DNA from: Epithemia pelagica | Taxonomy: Eukaryota; Protista; Bacillariophyta | NCBI GenBank assembly: GCA_946965045.2 | Contig: OX337239.1 | Span: 1,116,001 to 1,180,000 of the forward strand | DNA: 64,000 nt | Direction: 5' to 3' | Shown here: one piece after another, positions 5,298 to 13,165 of the stretch | Layout of the letters: every line of letters begins with the position of its first letter | Numbering within the stretch: the first letter of the stretch is position 1 | The notes under the pieces: model-generated | The model's input: only the letters and a program-made list of their open reading frames with translations | What the model was told of the DNA's origin: nothing | The model's database searches: none | Made by a program: the position numbers and the translations under genes

Positions 5298-5804
5298 TCA
5301 AGTGTCAAGGATTGCGGGTTTCGGACACTTTTCCAGATCCTTGTGTTCGTCGTCGTTGTCGACCGTGGACGAAGCCGCCGTTCCCTGCGATTGGGCATCC
5401 TCGTCGTTTGGCTGTTGCACAGTGTTGGTACGAGAATGGCCCGGGGCTTGTTCCGGTTGTGTTGTTGTTGTTGGTTGTCGTGCCGCGGTCCACTGTCGTC
5501 GTTCTTCCTTGGTTCGACAATAACAACACACGAGTGCGGCAAAGAGGATCCCAACCACAAATACCAGCACGACAATTTTTGTCACCAACGACGAGGAGGA
5601 TGATGATTCCTCGTCGTCCTCATGGTGGTTCCCATGATGCAGTCCGGTCCCACCGCGGACACGTCCTAGACTGCCACCACCGCCACCACTGGCTTTGCGA
5701 CCGTCCGTAACCGGCACCAGTAAGGCCCAGGAAACGAGCCAACAATAATACACGCTGGACGATAGCCGGGGTTCCCAGTGTGAGGTAATGGTCGTGGTCG
5801 TCAT
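5298..5804 (-). CDS. Small single-pass membrane protein of unknown function
   Basis: 168-aa ATG ORF with a hydrophobic N-terminal segment, Gly/His/acidic linker, TM helix KIVVLVFVVGILFAALV followed by CCYC and a Thr/Gln-rich tail. Confidence 0.5.
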   Translation of the reverse strand: MTTTTITSHWEPRLSSSVYYCWLVSWALLVPVTDGRKASGGGGGSLGRVRGGTGLHHGNHHEDDEESSSSSSLVTKIVVLVFVVGILFAALVCCYCRTKEERRQWTAARQPTTTTQPEQAPGHSRTNTVQQPNDEDAQSQGTAASSTVDNDDEHKDLEKCPKPAILDT

Positions 5805-6367
5805 GGTCGATATTCAGCTTTTTTGTTTTTGTGTGAAAGGGACCAGCCGGATACAAGTGTATTCGTAGGAGTATTCGGATCTTTTAGGAGCAACCGATGC
5901 CAATATACACCCTACCAATTAGTGTTTCCCAAGAAGAATGCATCTTTGCGACCTACTCGCGAATATTAAAAGAGCGACCGTGAGTCGCGATTGTACTATT
6001 CCGCAGACGCACACGATGCACGTGGAGCCGACAACACCACCGCCGGTACAACGTCATTCGGAACCCAGTCAGCCACAACGAATCCCCAAAGAAGGGAGAG
6101 AGAATAGAGCGAATTCCATTAGCCATAACACAAATAATTGGGGGAGCAAATCGAGCAACGAGAGACGAGAGAAACCTTTTGTCTTCTCTTCTCTTGGAAT
6201 CTTTATGGGGAGGCAACAACGTCAACCAGTCTCTCCCATCTCCAATCTTCTCCTCTCTCCTCTCCTTGTTGACTCTTCAATCAACAAGGGACGCAACAGG
6301 AAAACGACAACACACAGCAAACCCAAACAAGTCTTGGAAGCTGCAGTATTGAACACAAAACATTAGA

Positions 6368-7735
6368 ATGACATACGTACGACGAGACAGCGGTTCTTCG
6401 TCGTGCCGGCTCTTGCGGGAGCAGTGTGGCAGTATCCTTGTGGTGCTTTGGATGTTGACGTGCTGTTATTGGCAACCATGTTGGTCCCTGGTACTGCCGA
6501 CTACTGTCTTGAGACCCCTGTCGTCGTCCCCAACCACACGAGTGGCGTTCCAGTCACGACAACAACGACAAGGACAACATTCGTCCATGGAACCATCATC
6601 ATTATCATACTCCTCGAGACTGTCGTCGTCAACCACCCGTCTGCGGATGGAAACGGTCGAATACGACGTGGCCATTGTGGGCGGTGGACCGGCCGGGTGT
6701 ACCTGTGCCTTGTACACGTCGCGGGCCGACTTGTCGACCATTATTTTGGACAAGAATCCCGCCGTCGGGGCCTTGGCCATTACCAGTCACATTGCCAATT
6801 ATCCCGGCGTTGATCGGAGCATGTCCGGTGCCGAACTCTTGGAACAAATGAAGCAACAAGCCGTCCAATATGGGACTCGCTACGAACGGGCTCAAGTCTT
6901 TTATATTGACGTGGTGCAAGACGACGACACGCCACCATCCGAGGATCCATCGGCCACCACGGCCGCCAAGACGCCGACAACGGGATACACCAAGGTGGTG
7001 TACACACCGGAATTGACCGTCAAGGCCCGCGCCTTGGTCTTGGCGACGGGTGCCATGGGTCGGTCCATGCCATTTTTACCGGGCGAAGAAGAATTTTTGG
7101 GCAGCGGTGTGAGTTATTGTGCCACGTGCGATGGTGCCTTTTACCGAGACGCGGACGTGGCCGTGTACGGGGCCACCCGGGAGGCCATGGACGAGGCCCT
7201 TTTTTTGACCAAATTTGCTCGCACCGTGCATTGGATCACCCCCACCAATGTCGCGGCCTGTTTGGAACGCAACAAGGAATTGGTCAATATCGAATGCAAT
7301 GCCATGTTTGATGAAGAAGGACTCCGGCAATTGTTGGCCGAACCCAATGTGAAGCATTGGAACAAGAAACGCATGGTCAATGTCGTGGGGGAAAATGGGG
7401 CCGTCACGGGTGTGACAGTCAAGGACATTTCGCAGCCGGACAGCGAACAAGTCATTGCCGTCGAAGGGGCCTTTATCTACAGTGCTGGGGGCGGTAGCAA
7501 ACCCATTACCGACTTTTGCCAATCCACGGTCGACTTGGACGACCAAGGCGGGGTCATTGTCAATGTCGATAGTATGGAAACCTCGGTTCCCGGTATTTTT
7601 GCCATTGGGGACATTCGCAATACCGCCTTCAAACAAGTCGTCGTGGCGGCGGCCGATGGATGCATGGCCGCCATGGCGATTGAAAAATTCCTCAAGGGTC
7701 GGAATCGCGTCAAGGTGGATTGGATTCACAAGTAG
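6368..7735 (+). CDS. Flavin thioredoxin reductase (TrxB fold), FFTR/DTR-like, with bipartite plastid presequence; intronless
   Basis: FAD motif VAIVGGGPAG, LATGA, redox CATCDG, GDIR, C-terminal VKVDWIHK. The ~90-aa N-terminal extension is a hydrophobic signal (...PCWS-LVLP) plus a Ser/Thr/Arg-rich transit region. Confidence 0.92.
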   Translation: MTYVRRDSGSSSCRLLREQCGSILVVLWMLTCCYWQPCWSLVLPTTVLRPLSSSPTTRVAFQSRQQRQGQHSSMEPSSLSYSSRLSSSTTRLRMETVEYDVAIVGGGPAGCTCALYTSRADLSTIILDKNPAVGALAITSHIANYPGVDRSMSGAELLEQMKQQAVQYGTRYERAQVFYIDVVQDDDTPPSEDPSATTAAKTPTTGYTKVVYTPELTVKARALVLATGAMGRSMPFLPGEEEFLGSGVSYCATCDGAFYRDADVAVYGATREAMDEALFLTKFARTVHWITPTNVAACLERNKELVNIECNAMFDEEGLRQLLAEPNVKHWNKKRMVNVVGENGAVTGVTVKDISQPDSEQVIAVEGAFIYSAGGGSKPITDFCQSTVDLDDQGGVIVNVDSMETSVPGIFAIGDIRNTAFKQVVVAAADGCMAAMAIEKFLKGRNRVKVDWIHK

Positions 7736-8782
7736 TAGAACCACAAAAAGAGGTTGAATGTGGCCATGACGATTCGTATTACTCCTACTATACACTTTTT
7801 CACCAGAACAATTCGATAGAGCTAAGGATAGTTTCAAGTTCTAGCTCTATGCAATAGGATGAATGCTTTTCCCTGCGGGTCGTCTCTCGTTGTCATTCGT
7901 CCATACGAATCTAGTCTTCTCCCTATTTTCTGTGAGCGACTCTTGTGTGCGTGTGTCCAGGTTCCAAACAGTCTCAATGTCGGCAAATCTATACAGGACG
8001 CACGCACTTTTTGGTCCACATCATGGCGGGACCACCCGCGGTTGGTCCTCAAGTCCTATTGTATACGAGGGTAGGACGGGGGAAGGGAGGTTCGAAGTTT
8101 AGAGGACAAACCGTTTTCCTCCAGTAACGATATGGATTTAGGAGCATATGATGGTGACTCGAATCAAGACTATGATTGTGGCATCTGGCATGCTTGTGGA
8201 AGCATTAGGGTTATTTCCTATTCCTACTAGGAGTAACAAAATCCGTACCTTACATGCTATGTGTGCTCCGTGTTAGGTAGTTCAAAGAAACGTAATGTAG
8301 CGGCCCGTACGCGCTCTCGTTACTCGCCCGGCGCGAGGGATCGTGTCACCAACCATGTCGGCGGTTTCACGCGCAGGGGTGATGCAGGACACGCTCGGCA
8401 TCCGTGTGAGCGAACAATGAGCGAGGCGGCGAGCATTCGGAACCAAAGCACCCTCGGTTTGGGGATCGGGATTGGCGACCCAGTCGGTGGCAATGGGCTA
8501 TTGGCAATAAACCAACGAACGTGTCCTCCCGTTCTGAATGTTTTTTGGAGAAGAAAAGGTTGTGTCCAACACATTTAAAACGAGTATTATCTATCGTAGT
8601 GCGTCGTCGTCGATCCACAGAAAAAAGCAACCACAAGTGGCTGTTATTATTGTTGACTGTGGATTGTTGCGGTTGTTGATCTTTCAAAATTCATTGTTGT
8701 CCGGTCATCCTCCTTCAATTCAAAGGAACAAAACCACCACACAGACAAGTCTATATCATTATCAGTCATCCATACAACCACC

Positions 8783-11700
8783 ATGGTGTTGAAACAAATT
8801 CGGTTGCAAGATCATGTCACGGGTCAAGCCTTGGGCGAACAATCCTTGCGGGTCGACTCGTGGAATCCTCAATCCAAGACAGCATCGCACGTATCCAAAT
8901 CCTCGTCGTCGTCGTCCACCAATCCTACAACAACGACTCATAAGGAGGAGGAGGAGGAACTTGGTTCGGCGGCTCCCACCACGGTTCGATTGCAGGACCA
9001 TTCGACGGGACAAGACGTGGCCCATGTGTCTCGAGAAACGACCGAGGTGTTGCCCAGCGAAACCTTGGTGAGTCTTCCGCCAGAAGAGACCAACGAAGAA
9101 TTGGAGCAAGATCAAAAGATTTCCAACCTCGTGTTGGCCACACAAGCGTTGCGAGAAGCCACCTTGCGCAACAGCGGCAAGTCACGCGTCCAAGAAACCG
9201 AGAACAGTACTCCTGCAACTACTACTACCACAACCACAACCACAGACAAGGACGAGGAAAAGAAGGACGAGGAAGAGAAGGACAAGGAGACGGACAAGGA
9301 ATTGGAAGACAACCACAAGAATGAAGACAAGCAGCAACCAGAAGAGCCGGCGATTCTAGGACCTCCCACCACGACGGATACCAAAACCGTGTCTCCCTCC
9401 ACCTTGATTGACACTTCGGATGCCACCACGACAATTCCAGCACCGCACACAACGACGAACAAGACGGAGGATGAGCGAGACGATGACAGTGTGTGGGATC
9501 GAGACGACGATATCACGACGACAACAGTTCCGTCGTACAATCAAACGGCATTGGGTCGTGCTCTGGCCGACTTGTCCTCGTCCTCGGCAACCACCACCAA
9601 CAACACCAACAAAACCAAGTCCCTGTTACCCACCTTGTTGTGGAATCGTCAGTCGGCTTCCATCCCTGCCCTCAAGGTGACGACCCGTCATGGCAAACTC
9701 AAACCGCGGTACTTGAGCATGACCGCGGATCGATTGGCCTTGGTCGTGTCGCATAAGCAACCCCCCAAGTCGACCAACAACAACTTTGCCTCGACGACGA
9801 ATCAGGCTGCTCATACCAAATGGATTGATGTGGCCGATTGGGTGTCGTGGCAAGTGGGTGTCGTGGGATCGCAAGTACTGGAACGCGCACGGACCGTCTC
9901 CCGATTGAGTGGTCATGACGATCCCGTCTTGGACGAAGGACGTCGACCCCAAACCTTGGTCACCTTGTGGTATCACAATACGACACCGACAACCAATGAT
10001 GGCAGCGGTCCAACGACCACGACCACGAGTAGTGGTGCAACGTCCACAACCACCCTGGAAACACTCAATGTAGTGATTGCCAAGGAGGAGGATCGGCAGT
10101 CGTTGCTGTACACATTGCAAACCTTGTATCAAACCTATCATGGTCCCGACATTTCTTCATGGGTACCCGATCAAGCCTTGCAATTGCGTCGGGCGTGGTG
10201 TCGTCGGGTCTTGTACAATCCCCACAGTAGCAGTAACCACCAGCAGAAAAAGAAGAACAAGAACAAGAAACACCTCAAAAAGAACCACACCAGCCAACCC
10301 AACGACGAAACGACCATAACGGCCGCCGAGTTTGCCGCCTTGGTGCAAGAAGATTTGGCGTGGCCCGTACCGCAAGTGTACAAGGAATTTCAACTCTTTT
10401 GTCAAGCCTTGGATCAACGACGACAACACGTGACATCCCTGGACCAATCGGACGCCATGATTCAAAAACGACACCAGGGCTCCTCGTCGTCCCACCTCAA
10501 GGCCTCCTCCTCCATGACCATGACGACCAGCACCACAAAGACGACTACTCTAAATTTTGCCCAAACAATGGCGCTCTTGCAACAATTGAAACGACGCTCG
10601 GAATCTCTCCAACTCTTTCAACAACATCAATCGTCGTCATCGACCAAACCAGGCACAACGACGACGACCACGGGCACGGTGACTCCGACCTTGGCCTTGC
10701 CGGCCTGGACCAACAATGGCCGAACGACCAGTACCAAAACGACCGTGGCCAATAGTATTTGGAATGAAGTGTTTGGTCCGCAACGTCAGTCCGTGACGGT
10801 TCAAGAATTTGGCAAGGAATTTTTGCACAAGATTCAAGGCATGACGCACTACTCGCAAGGACAGGTTCGGGAATTGGTACAGTCGCTACAAGTATTGGAA
10901 TGGCACTTGTATGGCAAGGAATCTCGAAAGGCGGCTCAGATCATGAGCGAAATGCCCAAGCAACAACAACAACAACAACAACAAGAAAAACAACAAGATT
11001 CTACCAAAACGAAAAAGCAGGGTGAATCGTTGGAATTGACTCGCAATCGATTTGAATTGTACTTGATGGATGCCACCCTCAACAGTGCGTACAATGTTGT
11101 GGACAGCAGCCAGAGTAGTGATTTGACCCATCCCTTGTCCCATTATTGGATCAATTCTAGTTTTAATACCCACCAGGTAGGAAATGGGGCCATCGCGTCC
11201 GTGGAAATGTACCTCTTGGCCTTGCAACGAGGATGCAAATGCTTGGATTTGACCGTGTGGGATGGACAAGTAACAACCACAACGAAATCATCGACCAAGT
11301 CCTTGTATTGGCCAGTCGTGGTCGACCGTGTGCCGTCTTCCAACGGTGGCGGTATTCTCTTTGTGGATGTCTTGAAGGCTATCAAGGCCTACATTCAACA
11401 TTCCAATCCCCAAACCTATCCAATCATTTTGTCGTTGGAAACCCATTGCAGTGCACCTTTCCAAATGGCCATGGCGAAGAATTTGGAGGACGTTTTGGGC
11501 CAAGACAACACCTTGTACATTCCACCCAAGGACAGTCAAACCAGCACAACCCTACCGTCTCCGCAAGAATTGATTGGCAAAGTTGTGGTCATGGGCAAAC
11601 GTCCTTACGAAGCCAACGATGAGGAAATGACGACCGAAGACGAACCTGTCGGGGAAGATGAAACGAAGGATGATTCATTCCGTTCCGATAAGGATTCTGA

Positions 11701-13165
11701 CGACGACGACTATGATCCCTTTGTCAGTACCACAAAACCCAAGAACAAAAAGAACCTTCCTCCTCTTATTGTTCCTGAACTTGCAGAATTGACCTTGTTC
11801 CATGGAACAAAGTTACATACCTTTGAAAAGTCACTGTTGGATCCAGCCGCACATATGCATTCTCTCAGTGAAACCAAGGTGACCCGACTCTTGGCGGGGA
11901 AAAACAACCCAGACAATACGAAATCCGTTGCAACTGCCCTCACTTTTTCGGCTGGCAGCAAGAAACGTACAAGTGTGACGAATCTTTGGCGCTTGTTCAA
12001 TGGTCAGCATTTAACTAGTATCTTTCCGTCCCCCCGTCGTTTGGATTTGTCAAATTACAATCCCACCCTGGCCTGGTCTGTCGGGTGTCAAATGGTGGCG
12101 CTCAATTCCCAAATGCCTGATACAGCCTTGGTATTGAATGATGGTCGTTTCCGAGAAAATGGTGCTTGTGGCTACGTTCTCAAACCTTCTCCCGTGGTTT
12201 TGCCCGGAACGACCACTACGGATACGGACAAGGACGTCGAAGACGACGACGATGGCATTTTGAATACAACCGACCGATCCAACTTTATCACCAAAATTGT
12301 CATGGGAGCACGAGGCGGTCCCAATGGTACCGCTTCACACAAAGACAAGAAATCCTCCGGAGTCAGAAACACCAACGACCACAACGAGGGAGTGGAAATC
12401 CAGCACAATGGATGCTTTGGTGGAGGTGAGGACGACGAAGAGGTTTCTGGTTTGCACAAGGTTTTGGAAGGATTGTCGTGTGGTCCCATATGTGGTGGTT
12501 CAGACACACCATCCACAGATGTGGAAGAAGCCCAACGGTCGGGTACCACCTTATCGTCCTTGTTGCTTTCACGTGACGGAGGAGGCGCTGGGTCTCGTTT
12601 GGTTGCTCATCGCATGAATAAATTCCAATCCAGCATGACCAATGTTCTTCATCCCATGCGCATTCGTGTCCGTATCTTGTCAGGATCGTGCTTGCCGAAA
12701 CCTCGATCCGCTCCTGCAACCGCCCAACTTAATCCCTATGTGACGGTGACTTTGCATGATGTCAAACAGGGACCCAACACCACAGATGTCAGCAAAGGCG
12801 AGTCCAAGAATAGTTCAAGCGATCGTTTGGTCTATGTCTCCGCCAGCTTCCAGTCCAAGGTGGTGCAACAAAACGGATATTGTCCCGTTTGGAAGAAACC
12901 TGGTCGCGAAATGAAGGAACTACATGTGCTGAGTCCACAAGTGGCCATGTTGCAATTTTCCGTCCTGCACAAAACATCACCATCATCATCACCATCATCC
13001 TCGGATACAAAGCACGACGAGCGGATTGCGGAAGCGGCCATTCCGTGCAATCGGTTGCGCATGGGATACCGTTGCATTCCCTTATACGACACTCATACCA
13101 ATACTCGAACGGGACGACATGGCTTTGCCACCCTCATGGTGGAACTGCAAATTATGAACTTGTAA
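8783..13165 (+). CDS. Phosphoinositide phospholipase C-like protein (PH-like, EF-like, X box, Y box, C2), 1460 aa, intronless; probably catalytically inactive
   Basis: X box PLSHYWINSSFNTH...ALQRGCKCLDLTVWDG...YPIILSLETHCS; Y box SNYNPTLAWSVGCQMVALN...RFRENGACGYVLKP; C2 RVRILSGSCLPKP...NPYVTVTLH...QNGYCPVW. Confidence 0.9.
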   Translation: MVLKQIRLQDHVTGQALGEQSLRVDSWNPQSKTASHVSKSSSSSSTNPTTTTHKEEEEELGSAAPTTVRLQDHSTGQDVAHVSRETTEVLPSETLVSLPPEETNEELEQDQKISNLVLATQALREATLRNSGKSRVQETENSTPATTTTTTTTTDKDEEKKDEEEKDKETDKELEDNHKNEDKQQPEEPAILGPPTTTDTKTVSPSTLIDTSDATTTIPAPHTTTNKTEDERDDDSVWDRDDDITTTTVPSYNQTALGRALADLSSSSATTTNNTNKTKSLLPTLLWNRQSASIPALKVTTRHGKLKPRYLSMTADRLALVVSHKQPPKSTNNNFASTTNQAAHTKWIDVADWVSWQVGVVGSQVLERARTVSRLSGHDDPVLDEGRRPQTLVTLWYHNTTPTTNDGSGPTTTTTSSGATSTTTLETLNVVIAKEEDRQSLLYTLQTLYQTYHGPDISSWVPDQALQLRRAWCRRVLYNPHSSSNHQQKKKNKNKKHLKKNHTSQPNDETTITAAEFAALVQEDLAWPVPQVYKEFQLFCQALDQRRQHVTSLDQSDAMIQKRHQGSSSSHLKASSSMTMTTSTTKTTTLNFAQTMALLQQLKRRSESLQLFQQHQSSSSTKPGTTTTTTGTVTPTLALPAWTNNGRTTSTKTTVANSIWNEVFGPQRQSVTVQEFGKEFLHKIQGMTHYSQGQVRELVQSLQVLEWHLYGKESRKAAQIMSEMPKQQQQQQQQEKQQDSTKTKKQGESLELTRNRFELYLMDATLNSAYNVVDSSQSSDLTHPLSHYWINSSFNTHQVGNGAIASVEMYLLALQRGCKCLDLTVWDGQVTTTTKSSTKSLYWPVVVDRVPSSNGGGILFVDVLKAIKAYIQHSNPQTYPIILSLETHCSAPFQMAMAKNLEDVLGQDNTLYIPPKDSQTSTTLPSPQELIGKVVVMGKRPYEANDEEMTTEDEPVGEDETKDDSFRSDKDSDDDDYDPFVSTTKPKNKKNLPPLIVPELAELTLFHGTKLHTFEKSLLDPAAHMHSLSETKVTRLLAGKNNPDNTKSVATALTFSAGSKKRTSVTNLWRLFNGQHLTSIFPSPRRLDLSNYNPTLAWSVGCQMVALNSQMPDTALVLNDGRFRENGACGYVLKPSPVVLPGTTTTDTDKDVEDDDDGILNTTDRSNFITKIVMGARGGPNGTASHKDKKSSGVRNTNDHNEGVEIQHNGCFGGGEDDEEVSGLHKVLEGLSCGPICGGSDTPSTDVEEAQRSGTTLSSLLLSRDGGGAGSRLVAHRMNKFQSSMTNVLHPMRIRVRILSGSCLPKPRSAPATAQLNPYVTVTLHDVKQGPNTTDVSKGESKNSSSDRLVYVSASFQSKVVQQNGYCPVWKKPGREMKELHVLSPQVAMLQFSVLHKTSPSSSPSSSDTKHDERIAEAAIPCNRLRMGYRCIPLYDTHTNTRTGRHGFATLMVELQIMNL

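Follow-up and report, generated by a model that had tools for sequence, protein, structure and literature searches.

Among the enzymes that carry electrons from ferredoxin to thioredoxin (Trx), the closest described relative of the gene considered here is the DTR of the cyanobacterium Gloeobacter violaceus (GvDTR). Its structure is available from the Protein Data Bank (PDB) as entry 5J60 and, in complex with ferredoxin 1, as entry 6XTF, and the enzyme has been renamed a cyanobacterial-type ferredoxin-dependent flavin thioredoxin reductase (abbreviated FFTR, hence GvFFTR) (PMC8154056). In this enzyme C135 and C138 form the redox disulfide (PMC12796991), the tryptophan of the C-terminal tail, W315, stacks against the re-face of the partner subunit's FAD and is required for ferredoxin to bind, and pyridine nucleotides are not used (PMC8154056). 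The same job, from ferredoxin to thioredoxin in a photosynthetic compartment, is done by the iron-sulfur ferredoxin-thioredoxin reductase (FTR; FtrB/FtrA), which has an unrelated fold and a 4Fe-4S cluster in place of the flavin. In Prochlorococcus, FFTR is the sole Trx reductase, and the retention of FFTR with the loss of FTR has been argued to save iron; in the same 2022 review, only FTR is said to have spread into chloroplasts (PMC9025218). Nonetheless, a passage of PMC8154056 that cites Buey et al. (2017, Mol Plant) mentions the family in "a few marine algae". Here we describe a nuclear gene of the diatom Epithemia pelagica, located at positions 6368 to 7735 of the plus strand of a 64,000-nucleotide stretch of contig OX337239.1 (assembly GCA_946965045.2, positions 1,116,001 to 1,180,000), hereafter the window, whose product is strongly supported, by searches, profiles and phylogeny, as a member of the cyanobacterial-type FFTR/DTR family.

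The gene is a complete, single and uninterrupted open reading frame (ORF) of 455 amino acids with no intron, and an in-frame TGA at 6350–6352, five codons 5' of M1, makes this methionine the earliest possible start. The precursor can be divided into a putative signal peptide of the endoplasmic reticulum (ER) type (residues 1–40; 6368–6487), a transit-peptide-like region rich in Ser and Thr and with a net positive charge (residues 41–93; 6488–6646), and the mature enzyme (residues 94–455; 6647–7732), which comprises an FAD domain, a redox-active disulfide domain that may be called pseudo-NADPH, and a C-terminal tail. The computed pI is 10.3 for the presequence and 4.8 for the mature part. Pfam detects only the generic fold of the pyridine-nucleotide-disulfide oxidoreductases, as Pyr_redox_2 (PF07992) over residues 99–431.

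The initial annotation of this gene had read an intact FAD motif and an intact CATC disulfide, and both are in place: the FAD-binding GxGxxG is GGGPAG (residues 105–110; 6680–6697), and CATC, with C251 and C254 as the counterparts of C135 and C138 of GvFFTR (PMC12796991), lies at 7118–7129. The two motifs that bind NADPH are replaced, as had been proposed. VYGATREA (residues 266–273), placed before at about 7160–7190, occupies exactly 7163–7186, and within it the degenerate GATREA (7169–7186) aligns with the canonical GGGxxA; HWITP (residues 288–292) stands at 7229–7243, precisely where it had been located, instead of the HRR(D) that binds the 2'-phosphate. The protein ends with a basic tail, GRNRVKVDWIHK (7697–7732), whose last eight residues, VKVDWIHK (residues 448–455; 7709–7732), include the predicted tryptophan, Trp452 (7721–7723). 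This residue aligns with the DW of GvDTR and is the counterpart of W315.

Over the whole mature part, the window protein and GvDTR are 51–52% identical. GGGPAG and CATC occur in both, the GGG of the NADPH site is lost in both, VHWITP is identical, GDIRNT.FKQ is common, and both end in a basic tail of the form K.DW.H with its tryptophan. The segments that the initial annotation had named as typical of the clade (GCTCALYT, LDKNPA.GALAIT, VHWITP and GDIRNT.FKQ) are indeed shared, in the alignments, by the Gloeobacter enzyme and by the cyanobacterial loci L002–L013. The nearest prokaryotic sequences are the FFTRs of Prochlorococcus and marine Synechococcus (L003–L012), with 51–55% identity by tblastn and 57–62% in the alignment designated A2; their tails read R(V/P)DW(I/V/D)H. 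The diatom gene differs from that of Gloeobacter in being eukaryotic and nuclear, with a 93-residue bipartite plastid presequence, and in a few changes within the mature part that are treated later.

The low-molecular-weight NADPH-dependent thioredoxin reductases (NTRs), such as Escherichia coli TrxB (1TDE, 1F6M; family TIGR01292), and the NTRC proteins share with the window protein the two-domain fold, the CATC motif and the FAD site. However, NTRs retain GGGxxA and HRRD and have no tryptophan tail, the opposite of what is found here: in 43 canonical NTR ORFs from prokaryotic genomes, GGG(D/N)xA and HRR(D) are found at the same alignment columns, and the C-terminus carries no aromatic tail. 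NTRC, from plants and algae, has in addition a fused Trx domain, which the window protein lacks, and was rejected as an identification for this reason. Two other groups resemble the window protein in chemistry or in architecture. The clostridial FFTR (6GNA, 6GNC, 6GND) is driven by ferredoxin, is independent of NADPH and combines a flavin with a CxxC, but it lacks a C-terminal aromatic tail, uses 2x[4Fe-4S] ferredoxins, and resembles the window protein only weakly and over part of the sequence (E 7e-21). DDOR (5JRI, 5N0J), a cyanobacterial flavoprotein of TrxR-like build, has no NADPH site and is extended at its C-terminus, and its match is likewise much weaker than that of the Gloeobacter enzyme; it has two flavin cofactors per subunit, and PMC9025218 names no thioredoxin-reductase role for it.

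When the window protein was searched with phmmer against all PDB sequences, 5J60/6XTF came first at E 2.1e-105, while the best canonical NTR reached 4.6e-50, the clostridial FFTR 6.6e-21 and the two DDOR entries 6e-16 and 1e-15. A likeness at E 2e-105 is far above chance, and the distance to the last two groups led to the rejection of DDOR and clostridial FFTR. With hidden Markov models built from prokaryotic sequences only, the mature protein scored 434.5 bits for cyanobacterial FFTR, 328.4 for the FFTR-like proteins of Chloroflexota and 281.1 for NTR.

For the phylogeny, 80 prokaryotic loci were collected using an alignment of the diatom orthologues, and their ORFs were extracted. The careful tree was computed with IQ-TREE under LG+C20 PMSF from 80 rows and 323 columns, and supports are given as ultrafast bootstrap/SH-aLRT. 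Rows left out comprised five near-duplicates (four Prochlorococcus, one Caldilineaceae), one of two Cetobacterium, four long-branch sequences and one truncated sequence; Gloeobacter, absent among the 80 loci returned, and non-diatom algae are not part of this tree. The diatom sequences form one clade (100/99), the cyanobacterial FFTRs, among them those of Prochlorococcus and Synechococcus, form another (98/90), and the two unite as sisters at 100/100 on a branch of 0.52. An FFTR-like group of 33 rows, made up of diatom, cyanobacterial and Chloroflexota sequences plus single rows from Omnitrophota, Bacillota and Fusobacteriota, splits from all NTRs at 100/99, and every one of its members is devoid of GGG and HRR. 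The members in this tree all end in DW, DY or QY, and one of the dropped long-branch sequences (L026) does not. The placement that the initial annotation had anticipated, with cyanobacterial FFTRs and apart from NTRs, is found with the PDB search, with the profile scores and with the tree. That the diatoms are sister to the sampled cyanobacteria would suit either an ancient inheritance through endosymbiosis or an early transfer.

The tree also gives a view of the family outside the photosynthetic world. Many Anaerolineae and Caldilineae, both Chloroflexota, encode FFTR-like proteins that end in DW(S/T)(K/H) (loci L014, L016–L022, L024, L025, L032 and L043), and these too are without GGG and HRR. 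Tails ending in QY or DY are found in Cetobacterium, in one metagenome-assembled genome of Bacillota and in one of Omnitrophota. As all these lineages are non-photosynthetic, the tail-bearing class is broader than the term "cyanobacterial" implies.

Among diatoms, a word-based search returned at least 120 homologues at 59–99% identity. Every homologue with a named source comes from a diatom (Epithemia, Nitzschia, Seminavis, Pseudo-nitzschia, Entomoneis, Attheya, Cyclotella, Thalassiosira, Detonula and Skeletonema), they span raphid pennates as well as polar and radial-type centrics, and the corresponding ESM Atlas cluster is for the most part Bacillariophyta. Conservation was counted over 121 sequences, with a scorable subset that varies by motif: the FAD-binding GxGxxG is kept in 119/121, CATC in all 116 scorable homologues and VHW(I/V)T in 100 of the 107 scorable diatom homologues, GGG is never found at the GxGxxA site, and the tail tryptophan is present in 120 of the 121. 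The net charge of the last 16 residues rises from –1 in NTRs through +2 in cyanobacterial FFTRs to +5 in diatoms, and the extra-basic diatom tail fits the docking of an acidic ferredoxin.

The public names of these orthologues, in JGI and NCBI, are "thioredoxin reductase (NADPH)", "thioredoxin-disulfide reductase" or generic ones, in agreement with the expectation that such a gene would be labelled simply as an NADPH thioredoxin reductase. If these names were taken at face value, the window protein would be an ordinary NADPH-dependent enzyme, and this would find some comfort in the fact that TIGR01292 (TRX_reduct) is the top NCBIfam match. Its score of 254.8 bits, however, lies under the cutoff of 343.45, both NADPH motifs are lost here though they are kept in 43/43 NTR ORFs, the protein falls in the FFTR clade, split from NTRs at 100/99, and the Gloeobacter enzyme, with an identical VHWITP, does not use pyridine nucleotides (PMC8154056). 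An ordinary NTR is, for these reasons, a very improbable identity, and the canonical NTR was rejected on its motifs, its score under the cutoff and its wrong clade. In practice, NADPH is probably not used by the public diatom proteins, over 100 in number, that bear the label "thioredoxin reductase (NADPH)", which matters for metabolic models and for the reading of transcriptomes.

A structural model of the FFTR-type protein was obtained with AlphaFold2 (AF2) from a 41-row alignment, with a mean confidence (pLDDT) of 88. Foldseek lists 5j60/6xtf first by E-value, at 51–52% identity, and assigns a probability of 1.0 both to 5j60/6xtf and to NTRs. The pose of the monomer is closed and flavin-oxidising (FO), with TM scores of 0.74–0.77 to NTR structures in the FO state and 0.51 to the open 5J60 crystal; the low score to 5J60 reflects a difference of domain pose and not of fold.

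Regarding the location of the enzyme, the bipartite presequence that had been predicted is present. The signal peptide has a positively charged n-region and an h-region, SILVVLWMLTCC, with a mean Kyte-Doolittle value of 2.4 over 12 residues, followed by a predicted cleavage site with small residues at –3 and –1, CWS↓LVL, which leaves L41 at +1; an alternative site, TCC↓YWQ, would leave Y34. Residues 41–93 contain 33% Ser plus Thr and seven Arg/Lys versus three Asp/Glu. The orthologues have presequences of the textbook diatom bipartite type, with ASA↓F, TCA↓F, STA↓F, TSA↓F or SS↓F. A simple rule of our own (an h-region, then small-x-small and F/Y/W/L) was applied to the 85 homologues that start with Met and in which the FAD motif is preceded by at least 45 residues: 78 of these full-length sequences conform to it, and in 76 the +1 residue is Phe, as in the ASAFAP plastid signature. 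The two exceptions among the 78 are the window protein, with CWS↓LVL, and its nearest named relative, from Epithemia, with TAS↓LIL; another orthologue (P0003) reads SS↓FVLV where the window protein has CWS↓LVL.

The Leu at +1 weakens the localisation call for this species, and it raises the prospect that a genuine FFTR might fail to reach the stroma here, being retained in the ER or in the periplastidic space by the Leu or Tyr with which its transit peptide starts. The window protein and its Epithemia relative are the sole Phe-less ones among the 78 scored, Phe at +1 has been described as crucial for import (PMC4329603), and the NTRC-type reductase of Phaeodactylum tricornutum is reported to be periplastidic (PMC8211711, PMC3101018). 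Against such retention, the high-confidence class of ASAFind accepts F, Y, W or L at +1 (PMC12136025), a rule that the window protein satisfies with its non-canonical L41; the region after the cleavage site is transit-peptide-like, with its Ser/Thr content and net positive charge; the presequence is conserved between the two haplotypes described below; and there is no known donor outside the stroma for a ferredoxin-dependent enzyme. Retention outside the stroma is thus quite unlikely. Judged by the presequences, stromal targeting has good support in the family, and in the window copy it is plausible but non-canonical. The Thalassiosira pseudonana plastid proteome offered no evidence on this point, its plastid fraction having lost the stroma (PMC6683858).

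The public model of this gene (P0001) has 362 amino acids and starts at M94, without any presequence. This start was rejected: the reading frame stays open back to M1, a single synonymous change is all that separates the presequences of the two haplotypes, the orthologues carry presequences, and the transcript-like contig begins about 220 nucleotides upstream of the main ATG.

Within the mature part, the diatom enzymes depart from the cyanobacterial ones in a number of ways. Two Trx-binding motifs, G-R/K-G and FF, have been reported as common to all cyanobacterial FFTRs, the first of them also as shared with NTRs (PMC9025218). At the position of the first, just before the CxxC, the window protein has G-S-G (residues 245–247; 7100–7108) where GvDTR has GRG. 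The middle residue, Ser246 here, is Q or S in 110/116 diatom homologues, GQG being the form of most diatoms, and R or K in 76/79 prokaryotic FFTR and NTR ORFs. As for the second, CDG is followed by AF, not FF, in the window protein, and by AF in cyanobacterial FFTRs as well. A further departure is an insert after VHWITP in the pseudo-NADPH domain, of about 17 residues in this protein (C298–F314; 7259–7309) and of 12–19 in all diatoms of the alignment, which is absent from all the cyanobacterial, Chloroflexota and NTR rows. E309, N311 and D315, in the region of the insert, are invariant across 11 diatoms, and in the AF2 model V295–E304, just before and within it, forms an extra helix on the former NADPH domain, followed by a loop of lower confidence. 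There is also a variable surface loop, acidic and rich in Thr and Pro (residues 184–206; 6917–6985; pLDDT 61–70), which differs in length among diatoms, reaches up to about 23 residues, is longest in this species and is absent in prokaryotes. Lastly, two Gly are inserted before SKPITDF in the diatom sequences, and the tail is more basic than that of the Gloeobacter enzyme.

Two cysteines of the insert, C298 and C310, are shared by the window protein, Epithemia, P0003 and Seminavis, with the pattern SC.ER....VECN, and are absent in Nitzschia and the Thalassiosirales. They could form a lineage-specific regulatory disulfide, or be meaningless.

The change at the Trx-contact residue extends across the diatoms, and therefore the acceptor may differ or have co-evolved; likewise the GSG, the insert, the acidic loop and the added Gly pair leave room for an altered partner specificity. 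Under iron limitation, flavodoxin replaces ferredoxin in diatoms, which is relevant in iron-poor water. An enzyme with the fold and chemistry of FFTR might accordingly take its electrons from flavodoxin or from another low-potential carrier, or deliver them to another CxxC protein rather than to Trx-m, -f or -y, and the Q/S at the contact residue throughout the diatom clade, the diatom-only insert in the disulfide domain and the extra-basic tail can be adduced in its favour. The overall identity nevertheless remains high, at 57–62% to the cyanobacterial FFTR loci and 51–52% to the Gloeobacter FFTR, and the tail, the CATC and the flavin-site motifs are conserved. It is precisely the tail that binds the plant-type Fdx1 in Gloeobacter (PMC8154056), and the cyanobacterial FFTRs that reduce Trx-m likewise have AF behind CDG. 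We regard other partners, the chief rival reading, as an unlikely explanation, and the change of the G-R/K-G motif is, from the alignment, a clade-wide variation in a contact residue and not in a catalytic one.

The preferred reading is that the gene encodes a plastid flavin ferredoxin-to-thioredoxin reductase, independent of NADPH and working beside the Fe-S FTR, and this explanation as a whole is considered probable. The window protein keeps all the sequence elements of the GvFFTR scheme, namely the FAD site, C251/C254, W452 and the basic tail, and by analogy with that enzyme we infer ferredoxin as the donor, thioredoxin as the acceptor, independence of NADPH, stacking of the tryptophan and a stromal location. 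The signal peptide would take the precursor into the ER, the transit peptide would carry it across the inner plastid membranes, and the mature protein, of about 39 kDa, would form a homodimeric flavoprotein. Photosystem I (PSI) would supply, as for the Gloeobacter enzyme, two reduced [2Fe-2S] ferredoxins that hand their electrons singly to the FAD, each docking in the groove between the domains, against the tail of the partner subunit (by homology to GvFFTR; PMC8154056, PMC12796991), and the semiquinone would be stabilised by Trp452 from the basic tail of that subunit. The tail would then swing off, and the CATC domain would rotate onto the flavin, become reduced, rotate back and reduce a plastid thioredoxin. 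Since both pyridine-nucleotide motifs are gone, NADPH would not be used. Diatoms encode the Fe-S FTR as well, next to which this enzyme would operate, and such a parallel flavin route, already envisaged in the initial annotation, fits with the published nuclear FtrB of diatoms (PMC6367104). In this respect diatoms would differ from Prochlorococcus, where FFTR stands alone, and resemble Trichodesmium, where the FFTR and FTR routes coexist.

Several observations weigh against this reading. The GR/KG Trx-contact motif is replaced by GSG in the window protein and by GQ/SG in most diatoms; the 17-residue diatom-only insert is part of the domain that touches ferredoxin with its loops in 6XTF; the transit peptide of the window copy does not begin with Phe at +1; the monomer predicted by AF2, modelled without cofactor, adopts a closed FO-like pose, and its tail is of low confidence (pLDDT 49–71), so that it does not speak to the stacking of the tryptophan; and the type of the sequencing run from which expression is read, discussed below, is not on record.

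Diatoms perform a large share of ocean photosynthesis, often in iron-scarce water. The physiological implication of the reductase described here is that the diatom plastid may contain two routes from ferredoxin to thioredoxin, one of them iron-free, and a flavin enzyme in place of the 4Fe-4S FTR would spare iron. The presence throughout the diatoms of an FFTR that bears a plastid presequence also qualifies the statement that only FTR spread into chloroplasts (PMC9025218), and it bears on the debate over how diatom plastid thioredoxins are reduced and how far light-driven redox regulation extends (PMC6683858, PMC7378808). A search of 8 million papers, which did not take in Buey et al. (2017) or Weber et al. 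(2009), both in Mol Plant, returned no paper that links FFTR/DTR to diatoms. The diatom members of this known family seem never to have been studied, and their diatom-wide conservation, their plastid presequence, the change from GR/KG to GQ/SG and the diatom-only insert are apparently undescribed.

A bolder view, which we put forward as possible but on the doubtful side, is that all diatoms keep an anciently acquired plastid FFTR as an iron-free second route from PSI carriers to thioredoxin, which becomes the main one under iron limitation, and that the GQ/SG change, the insert and the basic tail reflect a re-tuning to diatom partners, possibly including flavodoxin. If true, this would contradict the inheritance of FTR only by plastids and would offer a concrete way into the old dispute over how far diatom plastids rely on light-driven redox regulation.

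With respect to expression, four sequencing runs contain the stretch. Two of them, X4 and X6, cover all 30 bins evenly, in a DNA-like manner. A third, X5, gives one contig over 6145–7744 at a depth of about 1449, with no differences and no joints, while its depth is about 0–2 in 5868–6101, 62 in 7740–7856 and zero beyond; an Illumina adapter remnant abuts position 6145. From this patchy coverage we infer that X5 behaves like a transcriptome. The gene then appears to be expressed and, as had been claimed, intronless, since the transcript-like contig runs through without joints, and to have a 5' untranslated region (UTR) of about 220 nucleotides (probable extent 6145–6367, plus strand), with the reservation that contigs cannot prove transcript ends. 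Marine metatranscriptome runs yielded a single conserved piece of 169 nucleotides.

If the transcript starts near 6145, it would contain an upstream ORF of 54 codons (MGRQQRQPV...) in another frame, at 6205–6366 (plus strand). A single base separates the TAG stop of this upstream ORF from the main ATG at 6368, an arrangement suited to termination-reinitiation.

The ENA contig from which P0001 derives (L001) is 99% identical to the window sequence, and together with run X6 it represents a second haplotype or strain. The identity to L001 is 100% in the putative 5' UTR, 99.6% in the presequence (one synonymous change) and 99.4% in the mature part (seven changes, four synonymous), which makes eight coding changes in total, five of them synonymous, whereas it drops to 87–89% downstream. 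This difference between coding and downstream identity points to purifying selection, with the presequence included.

The region behind the gene (7744–7953 and 7990–8205) has features of its own. The contigs of all runs break at 7744, small insertions behind 7786, 7795, 7890 and 7908 are seen in about half of the DNA depth, and the roughly 215 bases of 7990–8205 include 17 differences in X6. The two haplotypes or strains thus diverge sharply directly after the stop codon.

As for the neighbouring genes, the minus-strand ORF at 5298–5804 (168 amino acids) has a hydrophobic segment and an acidic, Ser-rich tail, and a separate high-depth contig of X5 covers 5400–5816; it probably encodes a small membrane protein that is expressed, and it is oriented divergently to the FFTR gene. 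Just downstream, the plus-strand ORF at 8783–13165 (1460 amino acids) combines low-complexity stretches rich in Thr and Ser with a phospholipase-C-like middle part, and X5 depth is absent over its first 100 bases.

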